NCBI RefSeq assembly: GCF_000315625.1
Contig: NW_005434635.1
Coordinates: 508,824 to 572,823 of the forward strand
Length of the DNA: 64,000 nucleotides
Source: Guillardia theta CCMP2712
Taxonomy: Eukaryota; Protista; Cryptophyta
Direction of reading: 5' to 3'
Within the stretch, counting starts at the first letter, position 1; every line of letters starts with the position of its first letter. The position numbers were made by a program, and so were the translations under genes. Positions 7,422 through 57,396 of the stretch are shown piece by piece. A model generated the notes under the pieces. The model searched no databases. It was not told where the DNA came from and was given only the letters and a program-made list of their open reading frames with translations.

Positions 7422-10377
7422 ATGGGAGGTAGGACTGGGCAGTTTGTGACCTTGTTGAAGCTTCAAGGAGGAAGTCTGTTCACAGAGGGCCCCGGGGCAC
7501 CAGTCGTTCATATCGCAACATACAAGGATGGAGGAGTTGGGGACTTCGAATCTCCTGCGGTCAGAAAGATTGTGGGAGCCTCGACTGGAGGCGAAGTGCA
7601 TGATCAGTTCAAGAACTACACTCTGCAAGAGTGGTTCTACGAGAAAGCTGTCAGAGCTAAAGACATCGAAGATAGAAAATCGTCAAAACAGAACGTCAAC
7701 CGAACAAGATTGGTGGATGCTACGAAAGACCTTGTGAGTGCGCTGGTCCTTCCACAGACAAGGCTCACAGTCTTGTGCAGATCAAGTCGGGGGCATCGGA
7801 GGTGACGCAAACGATAGGAGCTATCCCCGACCATATCGGATCATGGCTTGGCGGCGTCTCGAGCATCATCGAAGAGATTGCAGCTGCCGGCCAGAAGAAG
7901 TCAGTGCTGAACGAAGAGCAACTCCAAACATTGCGGCTCACCAGACAATACGCAACTAAAGGGGTGGAGGCTTTGATGGAGGGAGAGACGGCGCTGGAGA
8001 TTGCGAGAAACAAGCAGCGCGACTCACAGATGGTTCAGCAGAAGATCAACAAGATGAAGCTGACCAAGCACGAGAGGTCCTTTGACTTGAGGCTGCCTCG
8101 AGCGACACTCACGTCTCACGATGTGCAGCGAAAACAACGAAGCAGGCTCAAAGCTCTCGAAGCTCCCGTCCTCGCTCACCGTTCATGTTCATGGAGCCAA
8201 GAACTTGCCGAAGATGGACGCATTCCTGGGAAAGGTGACTTGAAGCTTCTCCCCGACAGCATCATCACTAATGGTATCTATGTAGGTAGATCCCTTTGTT
8301 GAGGTCACGGTTATAGACAGCCCTGAATCGCGAAATCTCCCGCAAAAAGATCGAGTAAGAGATATCTCTTTCAAAACTTGTCTCGCGTTCTCTGATGACT
8401 TTCTGTCGCAGACGAGTGTCTTGTATTCCAACTTCAATCCAGAATGGAATGGTTTGCAGCTCTCTTTTACTCTGTTCTAGAAGTGATTGTGAGGTCGCGG
8501 CAGAATCGTTCGACTTCACCATTCAATCCAATTTGAAGGGCGAGAAGAGGCCAGAGGTAAGTGTGGTTACATTGTCGATTTCAACTCATCAGAAGTCATT
8601 CAACAAGATTGTTATCGTCGACGTTTATGAAGCAGAAACGAAGAAGTTAGCTGTTGATATCTCTTTATCACTTTGATTCAAACTGTTCAGGAGTGACAAA
8701 GGCATTTTTGACAAGTCAGGCGGTTATCGCTCTTCTTTGCCGCTTGCAGTGTTTGAAGGCTTGATGCAACTCAGGGAATGCCGAGAACATCCTGATTGGA
8801 AGAGTTTACATCCCCTTGTCGAGCTTTGTGAGGGCAAAGAAGGTGTAGCTGCCTTTGCAAGTGATCTCCAATATTTGCTGACCGCGCTATCCCCGGCTGC
8901 AGGAGAAATGTCTGTTCAGTCTTGAGGTACTGGCGCTGGCAGTCAAGAGGCGGCGGAGAGAGATTGATCGCTCTCTGTGCAGGACTTGAAGAGAGGAGCT
9001 GAGAGTGAGCGAGTGATTTACAAAGGCAGCCTGACTCGATCCTTCGACCTCAGAAATGCGGAGAATGGAGAAGTGAGACGAAGCATGAGCTTCTTTGCAA
9101 GTGACGTGACCTCTGTCTGCTGTCAGGTCGTCTTCGGCTATTGGTACAACGGCAGCCCGAGCTCTATCAGAGTCTCTCTTTTCTTCATCGATGGTTCACT
9201 GTCGGACAAGGACAAACTTCCATCGCAGATCCCCATGGTTGAGATGCCTTCCTGACGACTCGTCTCGATCAAGACTGACGATCGGATCAAGGAAATGCCC
9301 GACAGAGAGTTCCTGGAGCCCAAGGCCCGACCTCCTCCCACCTGGCAGGACCATCCTGTCATTCTCGAGCAGCTGAAGGCCAAACTCAAGGCAGGTCAGC
9401 TGGTCTCTTTGCCGCTCCTCTCATCCTCCTTCAGACCCAGATGATGGAGAAGAGCGCTCCTCCTCTCCGCAAGTTTTTTGTGAGGAATAGCTCCGAGCAA
9501 GACAGCATTTACGTCACTCTCATCAGATACGGGATGACAAATTTCTCCTACGAGGTCTCTTGTTTCTTCTCGCCCCCCCTCCCCCCCCTCTCTCCCCCCC
9601 CTCTCTCCCTCTCCCTCTCCCTCTCCCTCTCCCTCTCCCTCTCCCTCTCCCTCTCCCTCTCCCTCTCCTTCATTCACTCTGTTTCTCATCCCTTTCTTTA
9701 CTGCCGGACCAGCTCGAAAATGCTGGGCTGTCAGAAGTCGAACCGCTCTTCCGCGAGAAGGAGCTAAATAGCATGTACGACCTGCTCATGCGGTTTCCTC
9801 CTGCCCCGACGGAGAAGGAGAGGGACGACATCTACGTGCTCGGGTCCTCCTCGCCTCCTCTCGCTCCCTCCCTCCTCATGTCTTCCCTCCAGTCTCGAGA
9901 AGGCCAGCCTCCTCCGCAAGCTCCGAGATTTCCGTCTCCGAGCCATTCAGCTGGTCTTGAGCTGCCGTGAGGGGCAGGGGGGTGAAGCAGCTGCCGCAGG
10001 TGACCAAGAGCTCGACGATCCATCGCGAGCTAGACATCAGGGAGAGAATGGGAGTGACTTACATCTTCTCCTCCGGCTCCACCTTGCAGGTCCAGGATGC
10101 CATCCATCAACACCCCTCACTCTCCTCCTCTTCCTCTCTTATCTCCCCTTCGCTGTCTTTTCGTCTCTCTCCCTGTCTCTTCCTCCTCCCGCTCGCACAG
10201 GTTGCTGATACCTCGTTCTTACCTTCTCTTTCCTATCCTTCAGGATCTTCTCGACAAGATCCCGGACAACTGTGCTTTGAAGGCAAATCATGATGCACCT
10301 TTCACGTATCGCTGACCCTTTTCCTTCCTCCTCCCAGATGCCGGACAGGCTCAAGGCAAACAAGGGTGAGAAAGCAA

Positions 10378-31992: not shown

Positions 31993-32415
31993 GGATCAAG
32001 GGTACAAAGTAGCGAGCAAGGAGAGCATGACAAGAGGGTTATTGCTGTAAAAGTAAACTTTGAGTTGCTGTGAGCAGAAGGAACCTGCTTGCAAGTTCTG
32101 CCATTGATCTGATTTCATCGTTCAACAAGCTAGCCTCAGAGCGAGAGAATATGGGAGCACAAAGACAGCAAGACAGCTCCTTCGTGGCCCTGTGCCTGCT
32201 CCCTCCCCTCAACNNNNNNNNNNNNNNNNNNNNNNNNNNNNNNNNNNNNNNNNNNNNNNNNNNNNNNNNNNNNNNNNNNNNNNNNNNNNNNNNNNNNNNN
32301 NNNNNNNNNNNNNTCTCTCTCCTCTTCCTTCCTCTCTCTCCTCCACTACCCCCCCCCCCCCCCCCCGTCTCTCTCCCTCCCTCCGGCCCCCTCTATGTAG
32401 ATTCGTACAGCATCG

Positions 32416-38332: not shown

Positions 38333-39635
38333 TCACTTCCTCTCAGCTTGGAAGTTGACATTCAACAACAGAAGTTTCATGGCTTTTGCGATGTTGATAG
38401 AAGGAGAAACCAACTGCGATGAATGTGACTTTGAGGAGTTGTAGCCTGACAAAGAAGAGGTTCGCACCAACAAGTATATCAGTGATGGATCAGCGTATAC
38501 CGCCACGTCAGAGATCCTGAAATCTTATCAATCTAAAAGGAACCTTCCATTCTTCCATACCTTCCCAACCAAAAGGGAAATTGAATGCCAGAAATCCGCC
38601 CGATTACTCTGAACATCGTTGCGAGGAGAGCGATTCCAACAGCGCTCAGCACCTGATACTTGATTCAAAATCCAAAATAAAGCAATCAAGCAAAAATATC
38701 TCGGTTCACCTCGTTCAACACGACAGATTGCGGATTCATGATGAAAGTGAACATGTCGTCAATAGAAACAAGGAGTGACACAAGACCAATCAAGATGTTC
38801 CTGTACAAAAAGGATAATGTCAGGAAATGATACACTATACATGCAAATGTATGCTTCTTAGCTGGTTGCTCATTTTTGCTTACATCTGGAATAGGTATGG
38901 CAGCAGAAGAATCTTGGGCGAAAGGAGACATTTGCATGCGAATATGAAAGTCCCAACGAATGAATGCAGGTTTAACAAAGTTGTCTTCTCAGTGGTCTGA
39001 ACACTTGAATCACCAGAAACAACAGGACACGTAATTAAGATCTTCTAACCAGGAACGAGAAGAAATGGTTTCGAAAGGCAAAACTTGCAAGTACTGTCGA
39101 TCGTGGACATAGGATCATGCCCAACTCTGTCCACAAGGATTCGAAGTAATGATCCTGCCTCCACGTCCACCACTGATAGACAATCATTGCACAGCTTAAA
39201 CTTAGTCTTTAAACACACCTGTATCAATTTGCTTTGCGGCGCTTGACGGTCCTCCACGTTTGCGATGTTCCCCGGAAGCGATGAAATCGCAGTTTGGTTC
39301 TCAAAGTTCAATCTTGAAGAGACGTCATCCAGGTTTGGTTCGGAAGATGTCAAGTTTGCGCTGGAGGAATTATCGCGGCCACCTCTCAATCGATGCATGG
39401 AAAGCCAACTGCAATGAGAGGACATCTGGGTTGTTGAAGACGCACCAGGCCTTCCCGACAAGCCCACACCACAAGAAATGAGTAGCTTACAACTTGTCGA
39501 TCTGACAGCTGTTGCTGGTCTCACGTGAATGGCGATGGTAAAGGGGATCTCAGTACACCATGCTAGCATGAAGCAAACCACTCCCAGCTCTCCCATCCCT
39601 CGACCCAAGGCAAGGTGCACCATAGATCGCACCAT
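38333..39635 (-). CDS. Hypothetical membrane protein with signal-peptide + RLRGG presequence
   Basis: Hydrophobic segment, then a Ser/Thr-rich stretch, then HRLRGG. Downstream exons are hydrophobic (NILIGLVSLLVSIDD, VLSAVGIALLATMFR). Confidence 0.5.
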
Positions 39636-40179: not shown

Positions 40180-42484
40180 ATGCCTGCAGACATGTCCGAT
40201 GATGAGATTCCATCTGACGGATCCTCTTCTCCGATGCCCATCTCACCTCGTGAAGCTAAGGTGACAAGTCATAGATGGTTTGCGGAGTGATGCTGACTTG
40301 GCGACAGGGAATGGAAAAGACTATCATTACTGAGGGGAGTGGCTGGGAAAAGCCTAAAGATGGCTATGAAGTTTTCGTGAGCATGAAGGGAAAGTTTAGT
40401 CGGGTGTTGGAAGATGGTTCAGAAGAGGACGAGGTTTTGTTCGATCAGACGGAAGGCGATGAAACAAGAAAGTACGTCCTTGGTTCCAACGTTCCTTGCA
40501 AAGGGCTTGAGGCGGCAATGTTGCAAATGAAGAAGGGAGAAAAGGTCATTCCAGGTCTGTTCCAAGTTCAGGATCGCTCACATTTTCTCCTCAGGCACTT
40601 GTTAAGTTGCAACCAGAAGCTGCATTTGGAGACGAAGGTCTTCCTGACAAGAGTGTTCCTCCGAAAGCTCGTGTCACGTATGAGGTCGAACTCAAAAGTT
40701 GGCACAAGGTCGAAGAAGTGAAGAAGACACATGGAGCTGTCAAGGTCTTGTACCTCGAGGAAGGGCAAGGGTACGAAAGGCCCAAGGCGCATGACATCGT
40801 CTTCATCAAATATAAAGCCAGGCTTGAGGATGGATACGAAATCGGAACTCAGGCTATGGACACGGAAGAGTCGACACGTATCTGTGTAGAGGACTTGCAG
40901 CCTGCAGGGCTCCGGCTTGCCGTCCAGGAATTGAAGAGAGGAAGCAAGGCAGTTGTCACCGCCAAGCCATCATATGCGTGGGGTTCGGAGGGAAGGTGAA
41001 AAGGAATGGAGCGGGAAGTAGTGAATTTGACAACTTTATGCAGCAAAGATCCTGCAGTTCCACCCGACGCAACGATTTTGTTTGATGTCGAGCTGAGCGA
41101 TTTCCACACGGTGGAAGATGTCTGCAAGGACGGAGGAATCCAGGTGGAACTGTTCAACAAGCCCAGCTCGGTAAAGTGATTCGAACTGCCTGTACACATT
41201 CTCATGCAACAGTCAGGCATGGAAGAAACCGAAGATCGGTTCGACTTGTGTGATCTCCTTCTCCGCAGCCGTTGAAGGAGGAGACGCTTGGGACTCTCGT
41301 GAGTTCGCCTCGGGTCAGGGTCTCAAGGTCAACCTTGGAGAGCTGAATTCCGAGCACGAATGTAAGAAGTGGTTGCACGACTAGTCAAGTGATTTGACAC
41401 CATGTCACAAGGGCTCACCGATGGCTTTGAAAGAGCTCTCGAGCATCTGGTTGCAGGTCAAGAGGCATTTGTGAAGATCAAGGTTCAAGATTCTCTCTCA
41501 AAAAGATCGTATTTTTTGACTATCTGTTGTCTACTCCAGGCCAAATACGCCTTTGGTGACCAAGGCTATGGCGACAAGGTGAAGGCTGGCAGCACGATCG
41601 AGTGTGTCAATATGTTTTCGTCTCTGCTTGTTACTGAATACTTCAAATTGTAGATACAAAGTGACGTTGGACGAGCTCATTGAAGGAAAGAGCACATATT
41701 CGATGTCTTCATTGGAAAAACACGAGTTCGTGAACAAGTATAAAGAAGTTGGCAACCATTACTTCAAGCAAAATCAGGTTCTTCCAGCTTATTGTAACGA
41801 GGGTCTCCTGTCTTGTGACATGCTGTCGTAGAATACACGAGCTCTCCGCTTGTACAAGGCTGCAATGGAACCTGTGGAGTATCCTGATTCCGGTCAAGAT
41901 GACGAGGAAAAGAAGGTGAGAAGTTGTGAAGGCACATGGCTGTGACAAGTTCCATGAGATTGTAAACCGCTTTTTCAGGCCGCCAAACAGCTCAAATCTG
42001 CATGTTTGCTCAACATGGCAGCCTGTAATGATAAACTAGAGGCGTGGTCTGAAGTAGTGTCTACCTGTAACAAAGTGAGCTCCTTTCTGCTGTTTTTCAC
42101 CATCATGTGATGGTCGTTTTCCAGGTTCTCGAGATGGCAGACAATCCCAAAGCCAGATTCCGTCGTGCAAAAGCTTACATGCATCTGGGAAGATTGGAGG
42201 TGAGATAGAGAAATGCGCCAACGCTTCGTTGCTGAAGATAATTCTCAGGAGGCGAAAGATGAATTCGTCAAACTGTCAGAGCAGAACCCCGAAGACAAGG
42301 TATGCCAGTTGCACGTGTCGTCCTGCTCTGATAGATGTCCGCAGGCTGTTCAGCAGCTCCTTGCCACCACCAGAAAGAGACAGAAGGAGCAAGATGCCAA
42401 GGTAACCATCTTGCTTCTTCACTTTCTCTTGACTAATTCGCCTGATGAAAGGCAAAGTCGGTCTTCACCAAGATGTTTGGGTGA
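40180..42484 (+). CDS. Multi-domain FKBP-type peptidyl-prolyl isomerase with C-terminal TPRs (ROF1/FKBP62/FKBP52-like Hsp90 co-chaperone)
   Basis: Three FKBP-like domains (KTIITEGSGWEKPKDG, PEAAFGDEG...VPPKARVTYEVEL, VPPDATILFDVEL, AKYAFGDQG). TPR region: KEVGNHYFK, CLLNMAAC, KARFRRAKAY. Ends VFTKMFG*. Confidence 0.9.
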
Positions 42485-42579
42485 TCCGTCAAGAATTCAT
42501 GTTGGGGCAGTCAGAACCCTTTCTTTTTGTAAATTGATATGAGTAAAACAAATATCGAATGATGAAAGTCTTCGAGTCG

Positions 42580-44022
42580 TTAGTCAGTCCACCCCGCTGA
42601 AGCTTTGCCAGCCTTCCCAACAATCACAACTTTGTCGATCCAAAATTCACCAATAACCCGACACTGAGAAGGATGATCTGAGGTCAACGAATTCAAATCT
42701 TTCAATATTGGTGTTTCAATTTTCGGCTCAATCGGCGGGAAAACTTCAGCTTCTTCAATTGTCCGTCTGAAAACTAACACGGAAGTAGTTGTGCTGTTTG
42801 CCTGGATCGCATTTGCTCGGTTGGCATTGTAGTCATATGATTCGATTTTGGTTTTCGAGATGAAGTTTGATGAGTTGCACGACTTGCCATTGTCTATCCT
42901 TTTTATCAATTTGTATGGATACAAATCCATAACTTCGTTTATCCATGTTTCAAGAACCTGCAACAAGTTACTTGACTTCTGAAAGACTTCAATTCTAAAG
43001 GGACCTTATCCGTCCATTCAACGTGGTTTATGCTCAATTCTTCACTGTTCGGTAGCTCGGGAGATACACATATCATACAAATGACCTAGATAATGAAGTA
43101 TTACATCATTATTTTAGGGAAAAGCAAATACATGTGGCGGTTTAATTTCACCGAAAACAGAACGAGAAAGCTGAGGAATAGATTCGGGACTTGTTTCTTC
43201 CAACACATTCAATATTGTTGCAACTTGATATCCCCTTAATACGTGTTCAGCTTGTCTCACGTCCCCAAGACAAAGGAGAACCTTCATCGGGTCAACTGCA
43301 ATAGATGTAGTCAGAAGCTTGATCAGAGATGGAATGATCTCACTTCTTGGTGAGATCACAGCTTTGAAAGGCACCGCACGATGAAAGCAATCATAAACTG
43401 CATCAAGAGCATCTTTGCGGCGATCGACACACATGAATCTGTTGATTTGAGGTGATTTGCTATTTGCTCGCATTATGAACCTTCCAGAGCCACAACCCAC
43501 ATCCAATACACTGTGAGCGTCCAGGTCATTCAACTGCTCACATACAGCGTTGTATGAAAACGTGATTAACTTGAGCAATTCTTTCCTATCATTGAAAGCT
43601 ATATCTTCATCAAAAGCGTCTCGCTCCCAGAATGGCTTTCTTTCTTCCATCAAAGCAGCATTTCGGGCTCTCTCTTTGAAATCTGCGAAGGTATCCACAC
43701 ATTTTTGTGCGACCATGTCACTGTTCTCCTTCTTCACTTTAGTTTTCATGTTACTCTGACTCTTGTCAAGCAAATTGAAATCTTGCCCAAAGTTCTCTCC
43801 TCCTGTAAAATGGGCCCATGTCTGGATGTTCGATTTCTTTTTCTTTGGTTTTGCAGGTTTGAGTCTTTCTCCTTTTCCTCCTCGCAGTCTTATAGTAAGC
43901 CAGGGATAGAAGGCGCGAATCTCTAATTGTGTGGATGACAGTGAGAAGCCGCGGATGTTTGTTGTTGCTTCTGTCATGGCCCATGCCATGCACACAATCA
44001 CAAGCACGTTGGTCGGACTCAT
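42580..44022 (-). CDS. HEN1: Divergent HEN1-like (small-RNA 3'-terminal 2'-O-methyltransferase fold) protein with signal peptide + RLRGG presequence, 3 exons
   Basis: VLDVGCGSG, FMCVD, LCLGDV...LRGYQVATILNVLEE...SVFGEIKP|...PNSEE...NHVEWTDK|VLETWINEVMDLYPY follows the HEN1 motif order DxGCG...GfD.itc.EvIEH...vfg.l.P...TPNxEfN...HkFEWtr.eF..W. Confidence 0.7.
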
Positions 44023-45191
44023 AGCAGAGGTTATGAAGTTGGTAGAGAGACAGGAAGAGAGAGGAGGAGGCTGTGAAGTCCTCTCCTATCCATGCGAATC
44101 AACATGGCGGCACGAGCATGACAGCATCGAGATGCTAGGGGAATCAGGCAAATCCGACAAGCCGTCACGATGCGACCATCCCTCACTGCATGGCGTCTTC
44201 AGCGGGCCCTCCTCAGGTATGAGTGGTCACATATCTAAAATTCACAACGGAAATGTAACGGACCCGTTTTGGCTCTTATCCTGCCTAATAGAACCAAGGA
44301 CCCCCTACCTCCCTTTTGTACCTACCACCCCGTAGTTTGACCACCGCAAGGCGCAGTGACCAGGCAGAACCCTCTTAAACAATACATTTGTACCTTTTAT
44401 AAGTACCGGTCTGTGTCAAATAATGTACCCCCACCCCTATTTTTTACTACCCTAACGGGCTACACCCTCACTTTGTCTGCCCCTTTTGCTCTCATCCTGT
44501 CTTTCCCCTCCTCCCCCTCCTTCCCTGCTCCTTACCAGCTTCAGCTTCTCTGCCGCTCTCCTTCCTGTCTGCTGATCCCGCTTCCTTGTGCTCATGTCGC
44601 ACAAAACTCTTCACAGAAACTCAACCCGTCATTCTCCTTCATGTCTTCTTTCTAGCCATGCCATTATTGCATTCTCTGTCCTTCTTTACTGGAAAATTCA
44701 CAGCCTTGTTGTTCTGAACCACTGAAGTTCTGTACCTTGATCAGCGTTGTTTTCCCACTCTCAGTCATCTTTTGTAAAGCATATAAACTTTTCTATCTCA
44801 CCAGATTTTCTCTTAGTTTTCTGACTCGTTATGACCAGGGAGGGCAACTCTGCGGTTTGTCCACGTGGGTCCCAGCTCTGGAGAAACTACTTGTAATACA
44901 CTTTGTGATCGTCGGAATATCTTGCAGCTCTGTTGACCTCGAGCAGACAGCATGATTTGCGGGTTCAATTCGACCTTGTGCGTTGGCGAACAAAACACGT
45001 CGTGAACTCATGAAATCAGAGCCCGAAGGGCATTCCGTTCAGCGTTGGTTGACATATTCGCCAACCTTGTTTTTGATCGAGAGGAATGTTAGGTCGTAGT
45101 GAAAGTGGTACCACGATGTCAGTAGAATTCCTTCCTCTTTGCTCCCTCTGACCTGTTTGGCAGCTCGAATGCATCGGAAGCTGCAGCTAGT

Positions 45192-46688
45192 GTGAAGAAG
45201 GAAATCACTCACCCGAATGATGACAGTGAAGAAGAACTTGAAATTCAAAGCAATTACAGTCCATTCGAGTACGAGGATGATGGAGAAGAAACAGATGTGA
45301 GCGATGTGTCTGCTGGCCCATCGCGATCATATACCAAGAGCTGCTCACGGATCAATGACTGCATTCGTGAAGTTCGTGGATGTCTGTCCCTCAAAGACAG
45401 CCATCAAGGGGTGCAGGAGCAGTTAGAGCACGTGCACTTGCAGAATCAAGAGCGATCAAAGCAGCAGAGCCTGCATTGTGCGATGCAGCAACGGGAGATC
45501 AAGCAGGAGCAGGAGCAACGACATTCCCCCCAGGCAATAATTGATCAGCCTGCTCGAGCCTCGACTCAAGCTCAAGCTCAAGCTCAAGCTCAAGCCCAAT
45601 TCATTGCAGCACAAGTGATGGATCCCCAGGCTCACATGCTAGTACACCAGGTGGTGGATACTCCAGCTCACATCATAAGGCCGCAGCCAGTGGATGCTCG
45701 CGCTCATATCATAAGGCCACAGCCAGTAGATGCTCGCGCGCATTTGATTCGACCGCAACCCTTAGATGCTCGAACAAACATAATCCGACCGCAGCCTGTC
45801 GGTCCGCGTTCTCAATTTGTCCGACCTGTAATGGTAGACGCACTTCATCTAGGTACGGAGGGTCGAATCCAAACTTTGGACGCTTTGAATCTCGGCATAG
45901 ATGCCCCTTTTGTTGTGGATGGATTGAATTACGCTTTGTTACGAAGGGAGATGGAAAATCGGTTCGGTGGTTTTGAAGGACACGAACATGCCTTCAGCTT
46001 GTTGGCAGTCAAGAAGGAAGAGAATGCTGACCAAGACGAAGACGACATGAAGGAAGACAATAATGAGGACGGTTCTTTAGGGGGAAAGCGTATTCTCAAT
46101 GCTGATCAAGAGGTTTCTGTCAAAAGAGCAAGAAACGCACAACAATTATGGATGAATTTGTCTGAAATTGTTTATCCTATCCTCAAGGTATGCTGTACGT
46201 GATCGTTTTGTTGCCTTTATTCTGTTTCAGGAGAAATCGAGAGGACATCCGCTTGAAGCTGTCATCAGCAAGGAAATGGAGAAGCTAAAAAATGCCAAGA
46301 ATCTGAAGCGGGTTCTTTTCGCATTCCTATACATCTGCTTGATAGAAGAAATGGTAATGATCGAATATGAAGAAGACAGTCAGGTATAGTCTCGGGCTTT
46401 CTGCATTTCGTTGACGTGAAATTGTTGCAGGCTTTCGCTGGAATCAAAGTGCTACAAGTCGTACCGGTTCACAGTGACAAGTTTTACAGGAGATTGGTGA
46501 TGTTGAAGTTTGGCATCTGGGTGGAGAATCCTGAGCAATCCATTGGCATCTTGCCGCTGACACCGGGACAAAAGAATGCTCTTCACAGCATCTTTCGGAC
46601 GGTCAACTTAATACCCAATGTGACTGGAGCGTGGGATCAATGTTTCCGAGGGGACGGATACTTCATGCATTTCGCCGCAAAGACTTGA
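45192..46688 (+). CDS. Hypothetical protein: acidic/Gln-rich N-terminus, 12-aa tandem repeats and a globular C-terminal domain of unknown family
   Basis: A 336-aa ORF splices to EKSRGHPLE... and AFAGIKVLQ...FMHFAAKT*. The start is uncertain and upstream exons are likely. Confidence 0.55.
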
Positions 46689-55800: not shown

Positions 55801-57396
55801 CCTCAATCCCATATCAGAGATTACGTCAAACTGTAAATTTCAATTTAGTGCTAATGTAAACGGATTTGAACATGTGGACGCGCAAAGAGTCGGGGAGGCG
55901 ACAGAAGTTTTCAATTCACCTGAGAAGATTGGTCTGAATCGTTGTCACTATCACTGAGATCATCATAGCGATATGCGAACTGGTCATATATATTCCTAGA
56001 CTGTCGCAAAATCAACGCAGAACTACAATCGATGTCAAACCTTTGGAATGTCTCTCAGTGAGGCTGGAGGCAACGAGTCAAGACACAATGCTTCCATTAG
56101 AAAGTCGCAAACGTTCGTCCTTGTGAAACATCAATCATGATATGAAGAAGTTCTCCTCTGTTGAAGTGTGCAAACCAGTTTCGATCTCTTGCGAGGTGGA
56201 GGGGTGTCGCCCGATTCTAACGAATCGAAAATTACTCCAGTTCTAGAACAATCCACCCGAAACGTCAGACCGGTCCCTCCGATGAAAGACTCGCATTCAC
56301 GGAGTGGAGCCACTTCAATACATCCAGCTGATTGAAAGTGAACCTTAATGAATTTCATTCTCTTTCCACAGCAGACCTGCCCATCATCCGCCGCATAGTG
56401 AACAGCCCTTCCCCCAAATGCATCGCAGGTTTCAAGTAGCTATCAGCGGCAAAAAACCTTATCAGCTTCTCTTCTCAAGTCAATTCCAACTTGTATTCTT
56501 ACATTTGGGTCAAAGTTGAACAAAATCCTGCAAATTGGAGTAAAACCTGATGAAGCTGCATTGAGAAAACATTAGATTGCTTTGATCATTTCAAATAAAG
56601 AATTCCTGCTATGTGAAAGGCATTCATATCACCAGGCCCTGTTTGGCTTGCATTTGATCCATGGTCTGAACTTATCGTTAAAGGGAAATACTTTTGAATG
56701 CATTGTTCACAATTCGCTGACCTAGCAAGACACGGACGCTCACAGACTTTCCACTCTTTGCTGCGAACTATCAAATAATGTAAATACTTCCTGCTACACG
56801 CAAACGGCTTGCATACCATTAGTGGAGTTATAGGCCTTAGCTTAGTCAATACGTGAGGAAGATGCTCCCGGTAATTTCGTAGGGAGCTAAGTCACGTAGT
56901 TGGCACGCTCACTGTGTTTCCCCAAATTGACTGACCTTCGTAGTCGTGGAATATCTTCATCTATGGAATGCTGCACCACTTCTCGAAACCTTTTTCAAAG
57001 GTGTGAATCTCATCTTGTTCTCTTCTATAACGCTCACATCTCGTCGGAAGGCGTCGTAGCTAGATCATTTTCATCCTCTTCCTCATCGTTTTCAACTTGT
57101 TGATACATATTCAAGAGGTCATCATCCTCGATTTCATCTGAATTGCATTCCTGTAGCATTTCTTTCCAATGCTCTTCTTTTAATTGATTCATGGATAATT
57201 TTGTTCTTGCCTCTCTTTCACTTTTCTCGTAAAGATTATCCCCCCCCCCGCGCAATTCCAAGCAAAGACCTGAAACCCTTGGGGAAGTATTGGGGAGAGG
57301 AGGCGAGGAGGAGCTCATCAGGAGAGCCGGGGAGTTTGCTTGAGATCGTCCGGCTGCTCGCAACACAAGAAGGAGCAGTAGCAACTTTATCGCCAT
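52840..57396 (-). CDS. Ankyrin-repeat protein with signal peptide + LELRGG presequence; the long AT-rich downstream exons may belong to this gene or to a second one
   Basis: MAIKLLLLLLVLRAAG signal. Ankyrin motifs: TPLM|FAAKSG, NAFHIA|ASSG, RAVHYAADDG. Exons below ~56300 are not resolved. Confidence 0.5.

Follow-up and report, generated by a model that had tools for sequence, protein, structure and literature searches.

A HEN1-family methyltransferase of Guillardia theta with altered metal ligands and a leader that resembles those of periplastid and nucleomorph proteins

What would a methyltransferase that resembles HEN1 do behind an organelle-type leader? This question is raised by a gene on the minus strand (44022..42580) of a 64,000-nucleotide stretch of Guillardia theta CCMP2712 DNA (contig NW_005434635.1, positions 508,824 to 572,823 of the forward strand), here called the window, whose numbering is used throughout. 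HEN1 enzymes are known from two settings, the Argonaute/Piwi small-RNA pathways and bacterial RNA repair, and the RNA biology of the nucleomorph is poorly known. A preliminary description of the gene, made from the sequence alone, had proposed a HEN1-fold small-RNA methyltransferase with rewired metal ligands, a paralog of canonical HEN1 sent into the endosymbiont compartment, and either a pseudoenzyme or an enzyme with a new substrate. Here, we find that the protein belongs to the HEN1 family. We lean towards a reading in which it is the sole detectable HEN1-family methyltransferase of G. theta, is imported into the periplastid compartment or the nucleomorph, and carries out 2'-O-methylation of RNA 3' ends by means of an altered metal site; its localisation, activity and substrate are what we infer.

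For the family assignment we used the spliced protein as given by the database entries P0001 and P0122 and by the complementary DNA (cDNA) contig L002, with single exons as other queries. The best family for exon 1 was the NCBIfam model bacter_Hen1 (TIGR04074, E 3.3e-10), other methyltransferase families giving 3.5e-4 or weaker; the match covered only profile positions 218-321 and 338-397 of 462. A profile made from the orthologous proteins of G. theta and Hanusia phi (66% identity) returned 94 matches at E up to 1e-3 among 1.84 billion representative proteins. The remote matches share only about 20% identity, and all nine that we scanned were Hen1 proteins (TIGR04074, E 1e-37 to 1e-180). Two remote matches were compared in turn with the Protein Data Bank (PDB); their E-values were 1e-34 to 1e-53 for human HENMT1 and bacterial Hen1 (4xcx, 5wy0, 3jwg), and 1e-25 to 1e-30 for plant HEN1. 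Against all PDB sequences, the two-species profile itself matched solely the HEN1 chains 3jwi, 3jwg, 3jwh, 3jwj, 5wy0 and 4xcx (5e-7 to 1.4e-5), the next entry being at 0.55. Since these profile E-values were obtained against HEN1 proteins and chains, chance resemblance to HEN1 is excluded. Plain Pfam scans gave only generic methyltransferase families, below threshold and at motif I, and phmmer with exon 1 alone against PDB gave nothing significant.

The predicted fold was compared as well. The AlphaFold2 model has a mean predicted local distance difference test (pLDDT) value of 69, with a core mostly above 90 and residues 19-107 below 50. In Foldseek the 11 best matches of this model were all HEN1 (1e-13 to 2e-10; next family 3e-8), and in VIA-align the seven best were HEN1 (Z 21.2-22.9, root-mean-square deviation (rmsd) 2.9-3.6 Å over 186-210 residues; other class I enzymes Z ≤17.4), with the reservation that the alignment behind the model consisted mostly of HEN1 rows and the model could lean towards HEN1. 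A single-sequence model from the ESM Atlas combined with a feature search gave HEN1 clusters only (score 0.95; 204 of 256 features shared). It had been named beforehand that the best structural match might be another class I family; instead, HEN1 chains hold places 1-11 in Foldseek and Z ranks 1-7. We conclude, on four mutually independent lines of evidence, that the G. theta protein is a HEN1-family methyltransferase, and the HEN1 fold and family proposed in the preliminary description are borne out by profiles, PDB matches and the predicted fold. The family call is not new, since the automatic UniRef name of the protein is already "Small RNA 2'-O-methyltransferase".

The catalytic motifs were compared in a MAFFT alignment of 85 sequences, including 81 HEN1 proteins, and in a HMMER alignment to crystal structures. 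The HEN1 motif order is kept, and all motifs quoted earlier lie at their described places. Motif I for S-adenosylmethionine (SAM), VLDVGCGSG (aa 172-180; 43483..43509, minus strand like all parts of this gene), is intact in its DxGCGxG pattern. The same holds for motif II, of the (G/C)VD pattern, which reads CVD (aa 198-200; 43423..43431) and whose acidic residue would contact the SAM ribose by analogy with GVD in HEN1 (bioRxiv 10.1101/2023.05.22.541725). The metal ligands of HEN1 are E796/E799/H800/H860 in Arabidopsis and E132/E135/H136/H181 in human, and the FxPP motif was reported to be important for substrate binding (bioRxiv 10.1101/2023.05.22.541725). In the G. theta protein NVLEE (aa 256-260; 43195..43209) stands at the HEN1 metal motif EVIEH, with Asn for the first Glu, the second Glu retained and Glu for His. 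NHVEW (aa 301-305; 43014..43028) stands at the place of DHxFEW, where RHxDHxFEW has become SINH-VEW in a loop shorter by 8 residues. In HEN1 the ligand His is one residue further from EW than the only His of NHVEW, whose equivalence is uncertain, as MAFFT aligns it with the DH histidine and HMMER with the RH histidine. TTPN has become VSPE, preceded by a 3-residue insertion, and FxPPLxxQR, which in HEN1 lies N-terminal to motif I, has no counterpart in the 85-sequence alignment (the aligned stretch is ..LITFS..). The changes of the metal ligands and the loss of FxPP that had been noted before are real and are conserved in Hanusia phi; NVLEETSPESIP and NHVEWTDKVL are identical between the two species. 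These conserved changes relative to HEN1, at what we take from the alignments to be the metal site, are among the new parts of the finding.

The 302-aa open reading frame (ORF; 44022..43114) and the 128-aa ORF (42966..42580), both on the minus strand, are one gene of four exons and three introns that encodes a 433-aa protein. Coding exon 1 (43344..44022; aa 1-226 plus 1 nucleotide (nt)) runs from the leader through the basic stretch, the WAHF block and the linker into the first part of the methyltransferase domain, where motifs I and II lie. Exon 2 (43132..43295) and exon 3 (43005..43085; 27 aa) are followed by exon 4 (42580..42957; 125 aa and the stop codon at 42582-42580), which holds the final strands of the domain, a variable insert and the conserved C-terminus ..VIVGKAGKASAGW... 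The introns, all GT..AG, measure 48 nt (43296..43343), 46 nt (43086..43131) and 47 nt (42958..43004). The transcript contig L002 (2869 nt, from a Joint Genome Institute (JGI) culture metatranscriptome) equals the window sequence save for one mismatch and is without the three introns, and the same introns are spliced out in contigs from three sequencing runs of three studies. Since intron 1 keeps the frame, the 302-aa ORF runs on through it. NHVEW lies in exon 3, in a frame that differs from that of exon 1 and the 302-aa ORF, and is joined to the protein by splicing alone. We considered a frameshift or a pseudogene as the cause of the frame changes and ruled both out, as the three spliced introns explain them. 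The 433-aa product is identical to the database protein P0122 and 5 residues longer at the N-terminus than P0001; its database twin is UniRef100_A0A6U5YTB8 (taxon Guillardia theta), which confirms that the window is nuclear DNA of this cryptophyte.

Selection on the gene was estimated as the ratio of nonsynonymous to synonymous substitution rates (dN/dS) by the Nei-Gojobori method from the G. theta and Hanusia phi cDNAs; dS is near saturation, which makes the ratios rough. The core (163 codons) gave about 0.10 and the spacer and linker gave 0.37-0.39; the lowest value in the gene, 0.07, belonged to the LRGG/WAHF module (aa 46-87). The gene is, by this comparison of two sequences, under purifying selection. 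Since the core ratio is so low and the stretches named above are identical in Hanusia phi, the motif changes are not decay.

By a library search and a word search we collected the closest relatives and aligned eight sequences: those of G. theta and Hanusia phi (P0003, species name from EukProt) and six clusters found only in marine metagenomes (P0004, P0022, P0025, P0037, P0096 and P0097). Invariant in all eight are LRGG, two basic residues, and W69, H71, F72, G75, F78 and G79 of the WxHFxGGxxFG block, which lies in the conserved stretch NIQTWAHFTGGENFGQDFNLLDK (aa 65-87; 43762..43830). LRGG, the basic stretch and this block are together the most conserved part of the subfamily. Elsewhere in the G. 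theta genome, no further copy of the N-terminal module (aa 43-97) was found. The LRGG/WxHF module is disordered in the AlphaFold2 model, and a second AlphaFold2 run on the eight-sequence alignment (pLDDT 46.5) gave no answer on docking of the WxHF block. The metal motif reads [D/N]-V-x-E-E-T across the subfamily. P0096 is found on gene-dense, apparently intron-poor eukaryotic Tara Oceans contigs of up to 16.6 kb, with E2F, SNF5 and MazG genes among its neighbours. One such GC-rich Tara Oceans contig of 16605 nt (L027) carries an apparently intron-less LRLRGG/WxHF/HEN1-like member at 8840-10159; fragments of this marine eukaryote are filed in NCBI as a 'Promethearchaeia archaeon' metagenome-assembled genome (e.g. 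MGB1607384.1), which looks like a binning error.

Several of these observations weigh against an active RNA 3'-end methyltransferase in the endosymbiont compartment: NVLEE changes two of the four canonical ligands, the fourth ligand is displaced in NHVEW, and FxPP is missing. Moreover, the full-length metagenomic members P0096 and P0025 are without the His of NHVEW, and the partial members P0004 and P0022 have a degenerate motif I. Judging from these sequences, the function conserved across the subfamily may be something other than catalysis. On the same side count two limits, given below, of the leader comparison and of the genome searches. Together with the shorter RH..DH loop, these features also favour a pseudoenzyme, that is, a HEN1 fold that perhaps binds SAM and does not methylate, and that would serve in the periplastid compartment as an RNA 3'-end binder or sensor, or as a scaffold through its N-terminal module; since that LRGG/WxHF module is invariant, conservation is strongest outside the catalytic site. 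Against this stand the perfect motifs I and II in G. theta and Hanusia, the identity of NVLEETSPESIP between them and the core dN/dS of about 0.1; canonical animal-type relatives vary motif I too (GCSEG in P0005). Each of Asn, Glu and Glu is well able to coordinate Mg or Mn, and for this reason the sequence makes an active enzyme more likely than a pseudoenzyme. We regard the pseudoenzyme as a doubtful reading, which the losses in the metagenomic relatives nevertheless keep alive.

The next question is where the protein acts, and we examined its leader. The N-terminus (aa 1-19; 43966..44022), as read from the sequence, is signal-peptide-like, with the hydrophobic core VLVIVCMAWAM followed by TEA. 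Then comes a Ser/Thr/Arg-rich spacer that starts with Thr and not with an aromatic residue (..AMTEA, then TTNIRGF..). This variable spacer ends in RLRGG (aa 45-49; 43876..43890), behind which lies the Lys-rich stretch KGERLKPAKPKKKK (aa 50-63; 43834..43875), whose basic character is kept in the subfamily. Hydrophobic N-termini are present in Hanusia phi and in the metagenomic relatives too. The organelle-type leader of the preliminary description, with its hydrophobic N-terminus, RLRGG and Lys-rich stretch, is thus found in the sequence. Spacers ending in LRGG also occur elsewhere in the window, namely ..LCLELRGG at 57255 (57396-57034, minus strand) and ..SMHRLRGG at 39389 (39713-39045, minus strand).

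A signal peptide and, behind it, a spacer that resembles a transit peptide and has no aromatic residue at position +1 mark proteins of the periplastid compartment and the nucleomorph (PMC5443833), and the HEN1-like protein has such a spacer after its putative signal peptide. Onuma et al. 2017 used an antibody to the sole nucleus-encoded histone H2A with an N-terminal extension and saw the signal in the nucleomorph (PMC5443833). Among the six H2A loci in the assembly, only one (L024, G000:C4) has an extension, composed of a signal peptide, a spacer, LSLRLRGG and the histone tail, and we infer that it is the gene of that study. Nucleomorph H2A and the HEN1-like protein share the signal peptide, the spacer without an aromatic +1 residue and the LRGG box directly before the mature part; their mature parts are unrelated, and localisation was shown for H2A only (PMC5443833). 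Two of the three best starch synthase loci bear ..NLRGG (L030 in C33) and ..SLRGG (L031 in C59) just before the catalytic domain: the former, ..TLNLRGG, is in a single ORF with signal peptide and catalytic domain, and the latter, ..RMSLRGG, is 15 residues ahead of the KxGGL start of the domain. Cryptophyte starch is located in the periplastid space (cell diagram, PMC5443833). As a plastid control, we inspected light-harvesting complex (LHC) proteins and found an LRGG box in none of 10 LHC-domain frames from nine loci, the leader exon itself being unseen in most; the one frame with a visible leader has Phe directly after the predicted signal-peptide cut. Small as this comparison is (3 positive loci versus 10 frames from 9 negative loci), it supports grouping the leader with those of periplastid and nucleomorph residents and not with those of stromal or thylakoid proteins. 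Delivery into the endosymbiont compartment, as suggested earlier, fits this likeness to nucleomorph H2A and two starch synthases.

The leader might instead direct the protein to the general secretory pathway or the endoplasmic reticulum (ER), and not across the periplastid membrane. The signal-peptide-like N-terminus is the one part of the leader that can be interpreted with some confidence, and the meaning of RLRGG is derived from few loci. However, nucleomorph H2A, which was localised by antibody, has a leader of this type, as do starch synthases, which make a product found in the periplastid space, and the ER lumen offers no obvious substrate for an RNA methyltransferase; we thus consider this destination quite unlikely. 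Within the endosymbiont, the basic stretch after LRGG could serve nucleomorph sorting or RNA binding. This element is specific to the HEN1-like subfamily and is missing from the starch synthase leaders. In PMC6411479, Nup98 and Rae1 are reported to be all that is left of the nucleomorph pore complex; since it is so extremely reduced, a role of the Lys-rich stretch as a nuclear localisation signal is speculation. In the literature we found no paper combining HEN1 with Guillardia and none combining LRGG with periplastid.

An ordinary cytosolic or nuclear HEN1, with its true start downstream of the leader, would make use of the in-frame Met12 or Met16, and the several upstream ATGs in the 5' untranslated region (5' UTR; 44023..44198, from transcript contigs) could be taken in its favour. 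We find it very improbable: contigs of four assemblies begin 134-176 nt upstream of the ATG at 44022 (upstream limits 44156, 44186, 44187 and 44198; no contig covers 44225-44455) and include the leader, hydrophobic N-termini and LRGG are kept in all relatives, and the LRGG/basic/WAHF region has the dN/dS of 0.07 given above. Transcripts that start downstream of the leader, a possibility raised with the preliminary description, were thus not what the contigs showed. There is no in-frame start codon upstream of 44022. About six upstream ATGs that are out of frame lie in the 5' UTR, an uncommon feature for an mRNA that is translated efficiently. In the raw RNA reads of one run (X20), only 11 reads fell on the gene.

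We also searched the genome for a second HEN1 and for Argonaute/Piwi proteins. These searches were made exon by exon and in six frames on an 87-Mb draft assembly, which limits any claim of absence for both. With the bacterial Hen1 profile, the animal-type HENMT1 domain and the protein itself as queries, no second HEN1 was found in this assembly, the other matches being generic ones to motif I. The gene is the sole HEN1 homologue that these searches found in G. theta, and a second one is likely absent; the earlier term "paralog" found no support, since none of the three genome searches gave a canonical copy. The Piwi profile PF02171 had no match in the whole assembly (G000) even at E 10; by this measure, G. 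theta may be without canonical Argonaute/Piwi proteins. The only match to the PAZ profile was weak (26.9 bits and E 1e-4, short of the Pfam cut-off) and lay in an 883-aa ORF. This single-exon ORF (G000:C54:418957-421605; L019:370-3018, plus strand) has a PAZ-like region at aa 378-486 and an acidic low-complexity C-terminus; its closest look-alikes in the ESM Atlas are N-terminal halves of Argonautes (score 0.79), a lead only. As a canonical Argonaute it was ruled out, for it has no Piwi domain, ends in the acidic low-complexity region and bears no LRGG leader. A 2019 survey of nucleomorph small RNAs does not mention HEN1, Argonaute or Dicer (PMC6461891).

The lack of a detectable Piwi partner can also be read in favour of an active methyltransferase with another substrate, such as a different hydroxyl-bearing molecule or an internal RNA position, made accessible by the rebuilt metal site and the loss of FxPP. 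The changed residues are indeed those that position the terminal ribose in HEN1 (bioRxiv 10.1101/2023.05.22.541725). Nevertheless, every detectable relative is a HEN1 enzyme, the (F/V)EWT helix and the overall pocket architecture are kept, and no specific alternative is indicated, so we hold this reading to be unlikely.

Comparison with known systems places the protein nearest to animal HENMT1 in structure and to bacterial Hen1 in sequence profile. Animal HENMT1 (4xcx, 5wy0), the best structural match (Z 22.9, rmsd 3.2 Å over 206 residues), resembles the G. theta protein in being a free-standing HEN1-type class I methyltransferase domain and in the order of motif I, motif II and the (F/V)EWT helix. 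HENMT1, however, has E132/E135/H136/H181 and FxPP where the G. theta protein has N-x-x-E-E, a shifted His and no FxPP. It lacks a signal peptide and acts on Piwi-bound RNAs, whereas no Piwi was detected in the G. theta genome, and the G. theta protein has an extra 140-residue N-terminal extension (leader and conserved WxHF block) and no match to HENMT1_C. Bacterial Hen1 of the Pnkp-Hen1 repair system (TIGR04074; 3jwg, 3jwh, 3jwi, 3jwj) gives the best sequence-profile matches and Z 21-22.6, and it exemplifies a use of the HEN1 domain that is independent of Argonaute, namely marking a repaired RNA end. It has an N-terminal Hen1_L and a Pnkp partner; no Hen1_L was found in the G. theta protein by Pfam scan, and Pnkp was not searched for. 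Plant HEN1 (Arabidopsis, 3htx) shares the fold in its C-terminal methyltransferase domain (Z 22.1) and contains, in addition, two double-stranded RNA-binding domains, a La-motif domain and a peptidyl-prolyl isomerase-like domain that measure microRNA duplexes, none of which was found in the G. theta protein.

The surroundings of the gene in the window are as follows. A neighbour on the plus strand (40925-42542) converges on the HEN1-like gene and has five introns of 44-54 nt (41602-41653, 41484-41537, 41363-41411, 41172-41215 and 40996-41041). The 3' ends of the two genes overlap, and transcript assemblies fuse both into contig L002. Upstream of the HEN1-like gene, an ORF at 45192-46202 (plus strand) contains a (QA)n run and a unit of about 13 aa (..HIIRPQPVDARA..) that occurs five or six times in tandem. 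An assembly gap (run of N) at about 32100-32210 lies within a minus-strand reading frame.

In the reading that we favour, an enzyme imported into the periplastid compartment or nucleomorph, the protein would enter the ER lumen co-translationally, cross the periplastid membrane and remain in the periplastid compartment, and the leader would be removed at or near RLRGG. In that compartment or in the nucleomorph, methylation of the 2'-OH on the 3'-terminal ribose of an RNA would draw on SAM and on a divalent metal bound at the carboxylate-rich site; the RNA would probably not be an Argonaute/Piwi-bound small RNA. The exposed basic stretch and the WxHFxGGxxFG block may contribute RNA binding, partner binding or sorting within the compartment.

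As the family assignment is already in UniRef, the gain of this analysis would lie in the compartment, the context and the variation of the active site, as far as these can be read from sequence. The conserved N-x-x-E-E variant would be a natural experiment on the extent to which HEN1 catalysis depends on the Glu/Glu/His/His site. A sole HEN1, no detectable Piwi and a leader of the periplastid/nucleomorph type would together point to RNA 3'-end methylation in the relict endosymbiont cytoplasm. More tentatively, cryptophytes and some uncultured marine relatives could send their only HEN1-type enzyme to the cytoplasm or nucleus of the endosymbiont, where a rebuilt, carboxylate-rich metal site would serve 3'-end 2'-O-methyl capping of endosymbiont RNAs (nucleomorph transcripts, tRNAs or imported RNAs) independently of Argonaute/Piwi. 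If true, this would amount to host-encoded control of RNA stability or repair in the compartment that bears the nucleomorph.

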